Part shown: positions 3,700 through 54,981 of the stretch, piece after piece | Numbering within the stretch: the stretch's first letter is position 1 | How the letters are laid out: every line of letters begins with the position of its first letter | NCBI GenBank assembly: GCA_002104945.1 | Contig: MCFH01000075.1 | Coordinates: 124,001-188,000 of the forward strand | Length of the DNA: 64,000 nucleotides | From: Piromyces finnis finn | Taxonomy: Eukaryota; Fungi; Neocallimastigomycota | Direction: 5' to 3' | Translations under genes and position numbers: made by a program | The notes under the pieces: model-generated | What the model was told of the DNA's origin: nothing | What the model saw: only the letters and a program-made list of their open reading frames with translations | The model's database searches: none

Positions 3700-4097
3700 T
3701 TACTACTATGATAATAACACTCGTCTAGCCGGCCTGAGAGGGTCTAATGTACATGGTATATTCCAAATTAGAACTTAATAAGTGGTGACTTAGGCTATGC
3801 CAAAAACACATAATATTCTTTAATCAATTTAAGTGTAAACATTAGGGGGCGGTTGACACGTGATCAAATTGACTATAAGAGGCTTAGCATTGTAGTTGTG
3901 AAATATCGTACAACGACATGCATCTAATGTACATGGATTAAGTGAGCGTCGAAGCTGAAGAAACAGTATGACAGACCAGGAGGGTCACAACCACCTAGCA
4001 ATAGGAATGAGCCAACGTTTCTCTAAGAACCACCATTGGAGCTAACTCTGATCGATGGGAGAAATGCACTCGGAAGTTAAAAAAAAAAAAAAAAAAA
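3700..4097 (+). mobile_element. GC-elevated island ending in A19; probable 3' remnant of a non-LTR (LINE/SINE-like) element
   Basis: Much higher GC than its flanks. Ends GGAAGTT then poly(A) at 4079-4097. 3944-3992 is homologous to 54523-54574 (minus strand). 14-bp direct repeat tctaatgtacatgg at 3743 and 3923. The left boundary is approximate. Confidence 0.4.
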
Positions 4098-36913: not shown

Positions 36914-39900
36914 ATGGAAATAGATACACAAAATATTTCTAATACCCCAAAGAACGTTCATTTTGATAATAAAGGCAAAAATGTCGAAAATGAAATGAAC
37001 TCTATGGAAAATTCAGAAGAGAGATTACAAAATACAGAAGAAAACACTAATAGCAGTGATGAAGGTGGAAATTTAGAATATATTAATGGTGAAGACGATT
37101 ATGTTGAATACGATGAATATAATGAAGAAGATGACGAATTTCATAATGTCAAAGATAGACAAGAGGTAAAAAGAAAATAAAAATATTATATAATTGCAAA
37201 TAAATAAATTTATGGGTTATTTTACATATCAATATAAAATGTGTTTAATCCTGATTTTTTAATAATTTTGGTATACTTTATTAGGCAATTAATGTAAGTC
37301 ATCCATTCGGTCTTCGTCTTTGGAAACCTGCTCTTTATAAAAAACATCGTTCAATTTTTACAAAAACACATGAAGCCCTTCACTCTAAACCTGGTCAATC
37401 ATATTCAAAAGCGGAAATCTTCCTTTTCCCCGGTAATATTATTTGGACTATTACCTTTGGTTGGATGGCAGCTTTAACATATTTATTTGTAGCTATTTGC
37501 CTTCTTATACCAGTATTTATTGTAGTTTTTATTCTTGAGCATGTTTTAAAACCACATCAAGCTATCTCTCTTTCACCTAAACCAAAACAATCAACTATAT
37601 TAGCCAGATATATTAGAGTAAACTTATTTTAAGTTATAATATATATTCAATATATATATATATAAAATTAATCAAATAATATTAATATATACATATATTT
37701 AGTTATTGTTTGGTATTACACATTATATTTTATGGCCTTTTGGAAAATACATTGAAAAAGTTAAAGGAAACTTTTCCGAAGATATTGATTACTACGCTGC
37801 AATAAACGAAGAAGATAATGATCGCTACAATAATTTCTTCAATCATGATATTGTAGGTGATTATTCAAGGAAAAGAAATGAACATTTCGCTCGTAAATAT
37901 GGTTATGAAGAAGAAGAATTAAAATGGGATTTTAAAAAACTTTTAAACTTATTCTTAAAAAATGGTATTTCAGGATTCTGTTATTACTTATTCATATTAA
38001 CAATAATTGCACCAATGCATTTAATTGTTGCTGCTATTTGTTGGATGTTCGTTGTTTCAATTCCAATGAGCAAATTAAATTTTGTTCTCCTTAACCACAT
38101 GTTATACGAACCATTAGAACTTTTTGTTCACTCTTCAAGCCCTCCACCATTCCAATTTAGTACAATATTTAAAAAAATAAAGAAAAATGATGATGATGAG
38201 GCTATTCTTCCTCTCATGAGCTCCCAATCAAATTCTCAATCCAATGATTTCAATAGTAATTATCAAGTTTCGGGTCAAACAGAAATTATTTTATGTACTT
38301 ATCGTGCTATTGGTCTTCGTTACTACAAATATACTTTTGGTGGTATCAACGTAATTTTCTTCAATTCTCTTCTTTTTGTCGTCTTTACCCTTTTAGACGC
38401 CTACATAATTTCACCAAGTACCGGAAAAACAGGAATTGGTCATCCATTAGTAATTTTCTTTTCATCTTTAATTTCAGTTATTCCATTAGCCTACTTTATT
38501 GGTATGTCTGTATCTTCTATCACTGCACAAACCAATTTAGCTCTTGGTGCAGTTATTAATGCAACTTTTGGTAGTATAATTGAAGTAATTCTTTACACAA
38601 TTGCCTTAGCTGAAGGAAAAGCGAAAATTGTTGAAGGTTCTTTAATTGGTTCTGTATTAACTGGTATTCTTGCATTACCAGGTATGAGTATGTTAACTGG
38701 TGGTATAAAAAGAAAAGAACAACGTTTTAATGCTAAAAGTGCTGGTGTTTCATCTACACTTTTAATTCTTTCTATCATTGGTATATTTACACCAACTCTT
38801 TTCCAAAAATTTTATGGTGCATACAATTTAGTTTGCGAAGAATGTCCTAATAACTTAAGTTCCTCTAATAATTCTACCTTAACGGATGCCACCACAATTA
38901 TGACTCAATGCAAAAATTGTCGCTTTAAACAACCAGATCCATTAGAAGATGAATTCTACCATAGTCACACTAAATATTTAGTTTGTATTTGTGCTGTAGC
39001 ATTAGTATTAACCTATGCTGTTGGTTTATTATTTACTCTTCGTACTCACGTCAAACAAATTTATGAAAAAACAAAAAAGAATAGTCAAAGACGTAAATCT
39101 CGTTCAAGAACTCGTCGCTCTTCTCGTACTCGCGCCAAAAAGAATTATTCAGGTTCATCCTACGATAATACAACCAACCGTAGCACTAATACTGCTACTA
39201 GTAACAATCTTAGCTATCCAGATGAAGATATCATATATAACTCATATGGTGAAATTATTAATAAAGACAGTAATATAAAATATGAATTTAATAATTTAAT
39301 AAATAGTGGAAATGAACGTTATTACCGTTATGATTCCGAAGCATCTTCATCATCTAAGAAAAGTCAAAGAAGTAGCCGTAGAAGAGGTCGTAGAAGTAAT
39401 AGCAGAAATAGTAGTATTAATAAAAATGAAAATGTTGATAAAACTCAGGATATTCTTTTAAAAGAACAACCCCATAATGACAGTGGTAATAACAATAGTA
39501 ATAAGGTTGATGCTGAAAATGTTGTTACCATTTCAAATGATAAATCAAAAGAACAAAAACTCTATACTATATTAAATATTCAAGCCGAAGAACCTTCCTA
39601 CCAACCAAAAATTCGTCGTCGTAATATTAAATCTAAGGAAGACAATACCTCTATTTTATCTGAAGATAGTGATACTGATAGTAATGAAGAAAAGGAAGTT
39701 GGACATGAAGCTCCAAGTTGGACTAAATTAGAAAGTGTCATTGTATTACTCGTATCAACTATCATCTTCTCATTATTAGCCGAAATTTTAATTGGTTCTG
39801 TTGATGTTGTATTAAAAAGTATTAGCTTGGATGAAAAATTCTTAGGTGTTACTTTATTCGCTCTTGCACCAAATGTTTCTGAATTCTATAATGCTATTGC

Positions 39901-40207
39901 TTTTGCTATGTATGGAAATATTGCTCTTTCTTTAGAAATTGGTAGTGCCTATGCTACTCAAGTAGCTATGCTTCAAATTCCTGCTATTATAGGTATTTGT
40001 AGTGTTCGTCACTTCTTTATTGATCTTCCATATGAAAGTAAATATTTCTTTACCTTAATCTTCAGTAAATGGGATATAATAACTATTATTATTGGTGTCT
40101 TTTTATTATCTCATGTTTATACTGAAGGAAAAAGTAATTACTTTAAAGGGGCAATGCTTTTAATGGCTTATACCGTTTTTGTCATTTCTTATTACTTTGC
40201 TGTTTAA
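36914..40207 (+). CDS. VNX1: Vnx1-type (type II CAX) cation/H+ exchanger. Exons 36914-37165, 37285-37617, 37703-40207
   Basis: Exon 2 has the Vnx1 family signature HPFGLRLWKPALYKK. YccF-like segments (LWPFGK, IPMSKLN). Alpha-repeats NATFGSIIE/GSLIGS and PNVSEFYNAIAFA/GSAYATQVAMLQIP. Many TM helices. Confidence 0.88.
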
Positions 40208-40727: not shown

Positions 40728-43700
40728 TTAATTTGTATTTTTTTCTAAAAATTTTATGGTTTTCTCTAACATTTCTGTATCTTCAAAATTAATAGAACTT
40801 AATTCTTCTAATTCTTTATCTAAATCATTTTCATTTTCATGCTTAGCTTGACTTTTAAATTTCATTGATGATAGTAAAGTATCTACATTTTCTTCCTTTT
40901 CCTTCATATTATTCTTTACAGAATCCTTAACCGACGGGATATCCTGTTCAATATTTTGTAATAAATCAGTAATTCCTTTCATTTCATCAATTTCTTGATG
41001 AAGATGGCTTATAAGAGTATCAATATTATCATCGAATGTTTCCTCTAATTCTTGTTGTTTTGAATTATCAGATGGTGATATTGAATTTAATTGAGGAATT
41101 GTGGATAATGTTGTGGAAGAATGATCTTTACCCTCTTTTTTATCCAATGAATTTAACTCAACATTATTCTCTTTAAGTAAAGATGAAATTTCACTATTAT
41201 TATTTTCAAATTCTAAAATTTCTTTTTTAATATTATAAATTTCTACTTCATTCTCATCTATATCAGAAAAAATTTGTAAAGGTAGGGATGGCTCTATTAC
41301 TGATAAGGAAGATGGTTCAACATCCTTAGTTTTACTACTACTTGATACCGGAACTGATAAACTATTATTATTTACTATTTCATTTGATGCCATTGATTCT
41401 TTTGTTGATGGTTCTAAATTAATATCATTCTTGGTATTACTATTATTAGTAATAGTAGTAGCATCATTAGTGTTAGTATTAGTATCATTGGTATTATTAT
41501 TAATAGTTGTAATAGTATTTTTATTAGTATCATTAGCATTATTATCAATAGTTGTAGTAGTAGTAGTATTTTTATTAGTATTATTAGCATTATTATTAAT
41601 AGTTGTAGTAGTAATAGTATTTTTATTAATCTCATTAGCATTATTCTTAATAGTTATAGTAGTATTATCAGTATTTGTATCAGTATCGATATTGTTAATA
41701 GTAATAGCATCATTAATAGTTGTAGTAGTGGCTGCAGTTGTTGTTATTGTTATATTTTCTTTGTTATCTTCTTCTAATTGTTCTATCTGTTTTTTTAATT
41801 CAAGAGCTATTGATTCTTGTTCTTCGATATTTTGATAGCTATCATTCAACAATGATGTATCTGATCTATTTAATCCTTCTGAATCTAATAGATTAGGTTG
41901 CATTGAAGATACCTTTGCTTTCTTTCGAATATGCTCATTATCAGATAATTGATTATTGATAGTATCTACAGTATTTTCCTGTATTTCAGAACAACTACGC
42001 TTATTATTAAACAATGATAAAGAATTTTTATATAATTCTGAAATTGGATATTTTTTTAATTCTGGAGAAGTAGAAGAAGACGATACAATATTATTCTCTT
42101 GTGGAATAATATTTGAATTATTGAATGATGATGGTAATGTAGAAGTTGAAACTTCGGGAATATTGTTACTGGTAGATGAAGAGGCAAAATCTAAACCTAA
42201 TATTTCATTTATTTTACTTAATTCTAATAAAGGTTCTGTGGATGGAATTGCACTTATTATATCATTACTACCAGAAGGTATAACAGTTGCCTTATTTGAT
42301 TGATCGAGAGTTAAATCGGATGTATGATTAATTAGATCAGGTTGTTGAGTAGTCTTAAATAAATCTAAATTAAATTTATTATTATCAATATTAATAGGAA
42401 GAGAGGATAACACATCACCCTGAGATGAAATATCTGAAATTTCATTAACATTTTTATTTAATATGGTTGAAAATAACGATGAACTAATTGGTTCTATTCT
42501 TTCAGTATTTTCTTTACCTTCGTTACTATAATAATTAGATAATAAATCTAAATCAATAGGTTGAATTGAAGATGATGATAGATCATCATTAATAATATTC
42601 AAATTTGTATTTGAATTCGTAATTTGATCTGTTATTAAGTTGGTATTTTCATTTTGCTTTAACTGTGGTACGTTTATAAAAGAAGATGAAGAAGAATGAG
42701 GAGTAGAAACTTTAGGTGGTTTATTTAATATATCTAAAGGAGATGATATATTGTAATCTAACGGTAAAAGAAGAGAAGATGGAAAAAGAGAGGGTGTAGG
42801 TATTTTCTCAGTTAACTGAGCTTTATCTAAATCGTATGAAAAATCTGATGATAAACTATTGACTTTCTTTCTTTTATGTGTATTACTAGTATTAGCACTG
42901 TTATTTGAAAGATTAAGAGAATGATAACGATTATGTTTATGATTATTATTTCTAGCGATTTTTCCCCATTCTCTTTCAGCCCTTTCCTATTATCAATAAT
43001 AAAAAAATTTTAATAATTTTATAATTTATATATTTATATATATAGTAATAATATATTTGAATTCAAGGTATATAATAAATTCAAATTTTTTATTTATTCA
43101 TTTATTAATGCTAATAATATAATAATTATTAATATTTACCCTAACAGTTAACCCTTCTAAATTTTCTTCTTCAAATTCATTTTCATTTTGACCTAGGTTT
43201 TGCATTATATCATCATCATCATCATCACCTTCTTCATCAATTTCTTCATCCGAATGATTATACTTTCCTATTAGTTTTTCTAAATAATTGGCATTATCTA
43301 ATTTATCAAGTTTAAGCGAATAACGATGCTGATAATAAGAGATATTGTATAAATCGTTTTCATTTATATTATCTAAAAAGGAAGAGAATTCATTTCTCTC
43401 AAATAAATTATTTGAAGGATTTAGTTTTACAGATCGTCCTATAGATTTGATATCGGTATTTTTGACTAAATTACTTTTTTTTTCAAAATATTGATTAAAT
43501 ATATTATTAATATCTTCCAATTCATTATCGTTTATGATATTATGCTATGGTTTTTTAAAGTTTTACGGAAATTAATACGTTAAAATATTATATATTGTAA
43601 TTATAATAATAGTATAAATAATCAACATTCAATAAAATATTATTAGTTTTAATTTCATAAGCATTAAATTTAAAATGATACAATTATAATAATTTGTATT

Positions 43701-44407
43701 ACTTACAAAATTGAAATTTTCTATATAATTTTGAATATTTTCTAATTCTTCTGATATACTTTTTCTTTTTGAAATGGTGATATTATAAAATAAATATATA
43801 TTGTATATGTAATAATAAAAAAAGTAAAATAAGCGTTTATATATAAAGAAAAGATGCATAAGTTTATAATAAAACAAAAAAAAAAAAAAAAAAAAAAAAA
43901 AAGTTGATTATTAATTAAATATTTATATATATAATTTATAATTAATAATAATACTTACTTTTTTGTAAACTCTAATCCTTCTTGGCCTTTACAATATGCT
44001 ACAAATTCAAAAATTTGGTCATATTTCATTTTATAAAAAATATACATTGTATCATAAAGATTATGTTTTTTTGCCCATTCATTGATATTACATAATTTTA
44101 TCCAAACATCTATGTATAGAGTAAAATAAAAAGAAATAATGAAATTATAAATAATTATATGTTACATGTATATATTAAAATTAAAATAATTCAAATCTGA
44201 AAATTATATTCATTATCTTACATTGTGTAATTTTAATTAATACTTTTGGAAATGCGTTTGGTTGGGTATAATAAAGCATATATAAAATATATAAATTACC
44301 AATATCCATATAGGCATTATTAAATTGAATTAAGTAAGCTAAAAATTTAAACCAAAAAAATAATAAAATTTAATTTATATAATTTGAAATTTGAAATCCG
44401 AAATTGC

Positions 44408-44442
<35 letters not shown>

Positions 44443-44910
44443 TACTTACAAATAGGAATTTCATACAATCCCATTAAATATTTATTTCGATAGTTTTTAT
44501 CCGTACAAATAAATTGGATTAAGGTAAAATCCAATTCTTCCCATAAATTAACAAAATCTTTAAATTTTAAAGATTTTAGCTTTTAAAAAAATAAATGTAT
44601 TTTTATTATTTTATTATTGTCAATAAATATTTGTTGTTGTTGTTATTATTAAAATATGAAAAAATAAATTATTGTTATATTATATTATATTCTATTATAT
44701 TATAGAAATGATGAAAATACATTCCATAATGAAAATCTACTTATAAATACTTTTATATACCTTAATAAATTCCTGTAATAAGTATCTTAAATCATTCTCA
44801 ATTGCTTTTTTTTCAATTGCAATGTCACCAATAACTAAAGAAGGTGGTCCATATATAATTTTGTTAGTTACATTTGTTGTTGAAGTTGTATTACTACTAA
44901 TAATGCTCAT
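40728..44910 (-). CDS. SNAPC1: SNAPC1/SNAP43-like snRNA-activating complex subunit with long low-complexity C-terminus. Exons 44910-44761, 44579-44450, 44338-44222, 44109-43959, 43764(or 43758)-43707, 43544-43140, 42986-40728
   Basis: The rebuilt N-terminus ENDLRYLLQEFIKLKSLKFKDFVNLWEELDFTLI...LYILYMLYYTQP..PKVLIKIT..W..........LYDTMYIFYKMKYDQIFEFVA lines up motif by motif with human SNAPC1 as I recall it (DCEALLSRF..SVRFEDFTELW..MKFGTIF; LYLLYGLYNTQ..PKQKIRV; HFDAAYIFRKL..RAFHFTA). All junctions are GT-AG and in frame; the exon 5 acceptor is weak. Confidence 0.8.
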
Positions 44911-54457: not shown

Positions 54458-54981
54458 ACTTCCAATGGGACACCGAGCCAAAGATCAAAATTTTGTCATG
54501 GAACAAAATTATGATCTCCATTGGTTGCGCTGGCCCTCCTGGCCTGTCTTACTGTTTCTTCAGCATTGACGCTCTTGGATGTTGCTTCAAACCTTTTGAA
54601 CATTGACCATTGCTGGCCAATAGCAAAAGGCATGATTTTGGTTAGAAGTTCCGCGGTTACCGTCAAGAATGGTGTTCCTTCGTTAGTATCAGATTGAATC
54701 TGACGCTTACAAAGTTCTTTCCATTCCCTTGAATTGTAATTAATATTGTTAAAACTTCTTCCCCCAAGAAGGAATTTAAATATTTTACTGCACACACTAG
54801 AATAATCATACACATTAATATTCACCGGATTATTAGAACTATTACTATCATTAACTAAATTACTATCTAAATTAGAATTATTATCTTCACTATTGCTATC
54901 ATTACTAATATTATTATTTCTATTATTGTTATTATTACTATTGTTATTATTACTATTTCTATTATAAATAATTATAAATTC
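54458..54981 (-). mobile_element. GC-elevated island with an ATG-less open frame; probable 5'-truncated LINE-like ORF C-terminus plus 3' UTR
   Basis: The open frame 54981-54496 (N/S-rich, then KIFKFLLGGRSF..REWKELCKRQ..TPFLTVTAELLTKIMPFAIGQQWSMF) has no in-frame ATG upstream. It shares a core with 3944-3992, has a 14-bp hairpin at 54483-54516, and ends GGAAGT like island 1. The LINE call is inference. Confidence 0.4.

Follow-up and report, generated by a model that had tools for sequence, protein, structure and literature searches.

The gene at the locus and its SNAPC1 domain

The DNA analysed here is a 64,000-nucleotide stretch of the genome of the anaerobic gut fungus Piromyces finnis (contig MCFH01000075.1, positions 124,001 to 188,000; hereafter the window). 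On its minus strand, at 44910-40728, direct reading of the sequence revealed a gene of seven exons with GT/AG borders, and the N-terminal part of the predicted product resembles SNAPC1 (SNAP43), a core subunit of SNAPc, the protein complex that activates genes for small nuclear RNAs (snRNAs). An earlier note on the window had proposed that four small exons at 44910-43959 were missed by the list of open reading frames (ORFs) and that only a featureless 624-aa tail had been picked up. Both proposals were confirmed. Exons 1 to 4 lie at those positions, where the list contained only junk ORFs of 42-57 aa, and the 624-aa ORF (40728-42602, minus strand), which begins at a TTG in the list, sits inside exon 7 and has no Pfam match.

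Exon 1 (44761..44910) starts with the ATG at 44910 and comprises 50 codons, ending in phase 0 at a GT donor. The SNAPC1 domain is divided over the next three exons, each with AG/GT borders, with part 1 in exon 2 (44450..44579), part 2 in exon 3 (44222..44338) and part 3 in exon 4 (43959..44109). Exon 5 (43707..43764) is short and its acceptor is located at either 43764 or 43758, with the reading frame unchanged by the choice; comparison with a related gut-fungus contig (L005) suggests 43758. Exon 6 (43140..43544; 135 codons) includes an acidic stretch and has no family match, and exon 7 (40728..42986) encodes a 752-codon low-complexity tail that ends with a stop codon at 40728-40730. As the first ATG of exon 7 is codon 362, preceded by 361 codons without any ATG, this frame needs the upstream exons for its start. 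The predicted spliced product has ∼1,090 residues. The DNA of the stretch is ∼79% A+T.

Pfam scans, phmmer and tblastn were run one exon at a time, on separate exon pieces. The curated cut-off of the SNAPC1 family PF09808 is 23.8 bits and its profile has a length of 191. PF09808 was the sole Pfam match of exon 2 (16.1 bits, E 0.012, profile positions 16-55) and of exon 3 (22.2 bits, E 1.6e-4, positions 64-94), and the top Pfam match of exon 4 (23.7 bits, E 5.6e-5, positions 98-144). The three matches were collinear, in agreement with the SNAPC1 motif order that the earlier note had read from the N-terminal part, and the simple sum of the three separate exon scores was ∼62 bits versus the cut-off of 23.8. 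The expected match to the family profile was therefore obtained exon by exon, with SNAPC1 as the best or only family for exons 2 to 4, but no single exon reached the curated cut-off. In the same piecewise scan exons 1, 6 and 7 each lacked any Pfam match, and because these 937 aa are of a composition like that of the rest of the gene and matched nothing from the SNAPC1 family, base composition is not the cause of the PF09808 matches. For the domain itself, residues 4-147 of SNAP43 in the human SNAPc structures 7ZWC and 7XUR provide the reference fold. A search of the ESM Atlas with exon 4 gave no usable match.

All seven exons were present in the same order on the related contig. The residue identity, determined by tblastn for each exon, was 91% for exon 1 (residues 17-50), 93% for exon 2, 97% for exon 3 and 94% for exon 4, and 67%, 68% (E 9e-46) and 47% for exons 5, 6 and 7, respectively, and conservation within the gene is thus highest in the domain exons 2 to 4. 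At the DNA level exons 1 to 4 were 88-91% identical without a single gap (exon 1 89%, exon 3 91%); the introns were 45-59% identical and contained insertions and deletions. The donor GT and acceptor AG dinucleotides were all kept, with the ambiguous acceptor of exon 5 as the single exception. This conservation of splice sites and exons between species supports the proposed exon junctions. Over 489 aligned coding bases of exons 1 to 4 there were 51 base changes and only 10 residue changes, which indicates strong purifying selection on these exons. Based on the exon conservation, the splice sites, the synonymous bias and the open frame of exon 7, we take the locus to be a real, functional gene.

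Across 466 aligned positions, which correspond to query residues 1-405, the tail encoded by exon 7 was 47% identical to both L005 and an orthologous tail on metagenome contigs (P0001), with better-kept blocks at the two ends. P0001 was the only relative recovered in a word search with the tail and carries neither a name nor a Pfam domain. The last ∼100 residues of the exon 7 tail, encoded at window positions 40731-41100 (minus strand), are far better conserved in P0001 than its middle, which points to a putative functional motif at the C-terminus. When exon 4 was searched against 1.84 billion protein representatives, the sole real match was a 90-aa fragment with 82% identity (P0002), next to one spurious match. 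Judged from this search result, public gene models of gut fungi may omit the N-terminal exons of the SNAPC1 gene.

Convergent with the SNAPC1 gene, at 37706-40207 on the plus strand of the window, lies a gene for a membrane protein of the Na/Ca-exchanger type; a PF01699 match is on record only for the copy on the related contigs. The exchanger gene adjoins the orthologue of the SNAPC1 gene in the related contigs too.

Candidate SNAPc partners in the genome

The conserved core of SNAPc is made up of SNAP190, SNAP50 and SNAP43, and SNAP19 and SNAP45 (SNAPC5 and SNAPC2) are not conserved (Sun et al., 2022, PMC9652321). The earlier note had called for SNAPC3 (SNAP50) and the Myb protein SNAPC4 (SNAP190) as partners in the same genome. 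For SNAPC3 the profile PF12251 matched four collinear pieces at C211:105925-106803 with 53.9, 39.3, 33.1 and 21.9 bits (cut-off 23.8), which together span profile positions 2-197 of 199. Judging by this near-complete profile, a SNAPC3 gene is clearly present.

A Myb profile scan of the genome returned 24 matches. The only array of at least three repeats was found in a multi-exon gene on the minus strand of C112 (L041, G000:C112:1156500-1163000), where a half repeat is followed by three full repeats. The piece that covers repeats Rh-Ra had human SNAPC4 as its best match in the PDB (E 8e-18; c-Myb 4e-13), and the alignment included the human Rh-Ra junction. An N-terminal helical piece and a piece containing YFKD presumably resemble SNAPC4 motifs, and no database match was obtained for them. 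A SNAPC4-like Myb gene, as had been anticipated, is thus present, but its identity as SNAPC4 is likely rather than proven. This gene, too, is divided into numerous small exons, with a very long poly-Asn tail at its end.

Other Myb matches were assigned elsewhere. Two large ORFs on C194 encode SANT proteins of the NCoR/CoREST type (corepressors), the candidate on C166 is CDC5-like, and the candidate on C201 has a single repeat. A quick look at C220 revealed no Myb-bearing frame.

Promoters of the snRNA-type genes

Searching the genome with Rfam yielded the following snRNA genes: U1, two copies; U2, five copies and a further decayed one; U4, a single copy; U5, three copies; and U6, two copies. 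Their upstream regions were unrelated (median ungapped identity 0.38) outside three boxes. In the U1, U2, U4 and U5 genes, which have the layout of RNA polymerase II (Pol II) type, CCAAT(CA) was located at -99 to -103, a second box (box 2, TCATYCA) at about -80 and a TATA box at about -40. In the U6 genes, of RNA polymerase III (Pol III) type, CCAAT was located at -89, box 2 (ARTCGT) at -65 and TATA at -31 to -33.

The U12, U3 and U6atac genes were held out and played no part in the definition of the motifs. U6atac had exactly the U6 layout (-89, -65 and -31) with ARTCGT as box 2. In U12, CCAATCA was found at -103 and TATA at -42. CCAAT(C/G)A was located at -98 to -101 in the three U3 genes, whose TATA box is at -38 or -39. 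Given a background chance of CCAAT of 0.018 per 17-nt window, a CCAAT start within -104 to -88 in 15 of the 18 snRNA-type promoters corresponded to P 4.5e-24, and the fit of all five held-out genes to P 1.8e-9. The earlier note had predicted that the snRNA genes share an upstream element like the proximal sequence element (PSE), and an upstream element is indeed common to U1, U2, U4, U5, U6, U6atac, U12, U3 and 7SL.

The 7SL gene was found only by means of the promoter pattern. A genome-wide scan for the three boxes gave 12 distinct sites, compared to 2 for the reversed control; six belonged to known snRNA genes, one to 7SL and five to other sequences. The 7SL gene, which encodes the RNA of the signal recognition particle (RF00017, 145 bits), occupies positions 1592-1888 on the plus strand of L033 (G000:C172:267923-270988), and the pattern site that revealed it lies 25 bp upstream. 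Its promoter contains CCAATCA at -91, TCATCCA at -70 and TATA at -35, and 7SL was grouped with the Pol III-type genes. The five other sites are followed by AT-rich sequence without an Rfam match and were taken as chance.

The promoters fall into two spacing classes, one with U1, U2, U4, U5, U12 and U3 and the other with U6, U6atac and 7SL. The distance from CCAAT to box 2 was ∼20-23 bp in 11 of the 14 Pol II-type genes and in 7SL, and 24 bp in all three U6-type genes. Box 2 and TATA were ∼41 bp apart in most Pol II-type genes and ∼33-35 bp apart in the Pol III-type genes. No B-box core was present within -50 to +450 of the U6, U6atac or 7SL genes, and all of these genes end in T-runs; together these two features fit a gene-external Pol III promoter, unlike that of the yeast U6 gene.

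Several gene copies showed arrangements of their own. Three U2 genes (L013-L015, G000:C146:599794-601833) are arranged head-to-tail with a period of 923 bp; relative to the U2 copies that are dispersed, the distance between their CCAAT and box 2 is longer by 10-16 bp. Two U3 genes (L049 and L050, G000:C183:70550-73019) are separated by 2.25 kb, have the same orientation and carry near-identical proximal promoters, with CCAATGA in one and CCAATCA in the other. Within the window, two GC-rich islands (54462-54786 and 3944-4040) had no CCAAT/box-2/TATA layout upstream on either strand and are for this reason not considered snRNA-type genes. When metagenomes were scanned twice for U6 genes from relatives, one scan was empty and the other gave an unrelated, GC-richer contig.

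A proposed SNAPc-type system and alternative readings

The explanation that we favour is that the gene codes for this anaerobic gut fungus's orthologue of SNAPC1/SNAP43, a member of a core SNAPc that acts at the shared snRNA promoter layout; we put the probability of this reading as a whole at roughly 0.7. The protein would consist of a conserved N-terminal SNAPC1 domain, split over small exons, onto which a lineage-specific low-complexity tail of ∼750 residues is spliced. Together with SNAPC3 and the SNAPC4-like Myb protein it would most likely form a three-subunit core SNAPc, as in flies, worms and plants. The SNAPC1 exons, the SNAPC3 gene, the SNAPC4-like candidate and the shared promoter element all support, at the level of sequence, the earlier proposal that a SNAPc-type snRNA system was retained in a fungus. 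We infer that this complex is the factor on the boxes: it would bind the conserved upstream region of the snRNA-type genes, cooperate with TBP at a TATA box located a set distance away, and recruit either Pol II or Pol III. The Pol II-type arrangement is CCAAT near -100, a TCATYCA-like box 2 near -80 and TATA near -40. In the Pol III-type arrangement CCAAT is located at -89 to -91, followed by box 2 at about -65 to -70, which reads ARTCGT in U6 and U6atac, and by TATA at -31 to -35. The choice of polymerase would be set by the spacing or by the box-2 variant. An element common to both polymerase classes, its rigid spacing and the parallel to the PSEAs of insects argue for such a SNAPc-type system.

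A number of observations weigh against this explanation. Every single-exon PF09808 score was below the curated cut-off, a six-frame PF09808 search of the genome was blank, and phmmer searches of the PDB sequences with exons 2, 3 and 4 singly did not return a human SNAPC1 chain; the six-frame result is due to the shortness of the exon pieces. The SNAPC4 assignment is weak, as a later repeat piece of the Myb gene matched c-Myb best, its N-terminal pieces had no PDB or Pfam match, and it contains 3.5 Myb repeats instead of the 4.5 of human SNAPC4/SNAP190. In the promoters, the distance between CCAAT and box 2 differs by 4-16 bp in U2a, U2c and U5c, and the CCAAT box is located further upstream than the described PSE elements or upstream sequence elements (USEs). 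Finally, CCAATCA, CCAATGA or CCAATAA occurs in nearly all snRNA-type promoters and fits the consensus of NF-Y (CCAAT(C/G)A, or CCAAT followed 3' by (C/G)(A/G)). NF-Y may thus have a site of its own in the CCAAT box, with box 2 as the equivalent of the PSE.

The last point leads to the strongest of the alternatives, in which the SNAPC1 orthologue is genuine and SNAPc is active at the snRNA genes, but the CCAAT box is an enhancer-like site of NF-Y (HAP2/3/5) and box 2 is the SNAPc-bound PSE/USE equivalent. The presence of CCAAT(C/G)A in almost every gene and the 4-16 bp shifts of this box in U2a, U2c and U5c, next to a distance from box 2 to TATA of close to 41 bp in the majority of Pol II-type genes, are what this alternative would predict, and the shorter distance in the Pol III-type genes recalls the USE-TATA spacing rule of plants. 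The distance between CCAAT and box 2 is nevertheless fixed in most of the Pol II-type genes, in 7SL and in the three U6-type genes, as would be expected for a single composite site, and the core of box 2 (TCRT) is short and degenerate; we consider this alternative somewhat unlikely, although a serious one. It is less probable still that the SNAPC1-domain protein is real and is not an snRNA promoter factor, with NF-Y, TBP and others running the promoters and the SNAPc-like proteins serving another gene class or persisting as relics. Nematodes offer a parallel, with duplicated SNAPC1 paralogues serving Piwi-interacting RNA (piRNA) genes. The box sequence differs from both the PSE and the USE consensus, the ∼750-residue tail is not seen in human SNAP43, and SNPC-1.3 of Caenorhabditis elegans shows that members of the SNAPC1 family can take other roles (PMC7884074). 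This second alternative would leave the strong purifying selection on the domain exons, the retention of SNAPC3 and the U6 genes without a recognisable B box to be accounted for, and we regard it as improbable. That the exon-wise SNAPC1 matches arose by chance in low-complexity, AT-biased coding sequence and that the gene encodes an unrelated protein would agree with scores that all stay under the cut-off and with the blank phmmer and six-frame searches. It would also require that three neighbouring exons match one family in the right order (two of them match no other family, and the remaining one matches it best), that these happen to be the best conserved exons of the gene, and that 937 aa of the same gene and composition yield nothing from that family, which makes a chance origin very improbable.

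The proposed fungal system was compared with those described in other lineages. The N-terminal PF09808 domain order is shared with human SNAPC1 (SNAP43, PTF gamma), and the fungal genome also contains SNAPC3 and the SNAPC4-like Myb candidate. Human SNAP43, with ∼370 residues, is far shorter than the predicted fungal protein and its low-complexity tail, and sequence divergence keeps phmmer from finding the human chain with single fungal exons. Insect snRNA promoters, which consist of a PSEA with a PSEB or a TATA box and are bound by DmSNAPc in the fly, have a PSEA with a common 5' half containing an invariant ATTC-CAA core and a class-specific 3' half (PMC1761439). The fly core is loosely like the fungal (T/A)CCAAT core, but the fungal boxes are located further upstream (-100 or -89 versus about -60), span ∼28 bp, and are accompanied by a TATA box in both classes.

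In plants, the snRNA promoters combine a USE (RTCCCACATCG) with a TATA box, and 7SL RNA uses this promoter type as well. The fungal promoters are similar in having an upstream box and TATA in both polymerase classes and in the correlation of class with spacing. They differ in the sequence of the box, in the size of the spacing shift (∼7-8 bp versus ∼10 bp in plants) and in the extra CCAAT box. The plant SNAPc consists of three core subunits only (PMC10533338). The yeast U6 gene SNR6 is a Pol III gene with an upstream TATA box and needs TFIIIC, which binds an A block inside the gene and a B block downstream of it (PMC5855946). A TATA box upstream of a Pol III U6 gene is common to both fungi, but yeast U6 is TFIIIC-dependent and the U6, U6atac and 7SL genes described here have no B-box core within -50 to +450.

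As SNAPc is known from animals, plants and trypanosomes, its retention in an early-diverging fungus is expected rather than startling, and family databases may already list fungal SNAPC1 members. In the part of the literature that our search covered, neither SNAPc nor a shared snRNA promoter element was described for fungi, and the promoter layout is apparently undescribed. The present data would place a SNAPc-type snRNA system within fungi, where the TFIIIC-dependent model of yeast dominates; baker's yeast is not known to have a SNAPc. The added value lies in a defined promoter architecture and in a practical lead to a U6 promoter.

A broader picture can be proposed, tentatively and with less than even confidence, in which gut fungi, and perhaps other early-diverging fungi, rely on a gene-external promoter that depends on SNAPc to express all their spliceosomal snRNA genes as well as U3 and 7SL. 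The recognition element would have converged on or merged with the CCAAT box, and the choice of polymerase would be made by a shift of ∼8 bp between box and TATA together with the box-2 variant. If correct, this would give fungi a type-3 Pol III promoter, which they are commonly believed to lack. The compact and apparently gene-external promoter of U6 and U6atac (CCAAT at -89, ARTCGT at -65 and TATA at about -31, with a T-run as terminator) is a candidate for guide-RNA expression in the Neocallimastigomycota, a group that is difficult to engineer. The promoter signature can also be used to find or vet other small-RNA genes in these AT-rich genomes, as it has already located the 7SL gene.

The two U6 genes (L011 and L012; C90:380707-380814 and C154:509082-509190) have an extra hairpin, capped by CUUCGG, just before the 3' T-run. 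The 5' stem-loop of the two copies differs by a compensated change.

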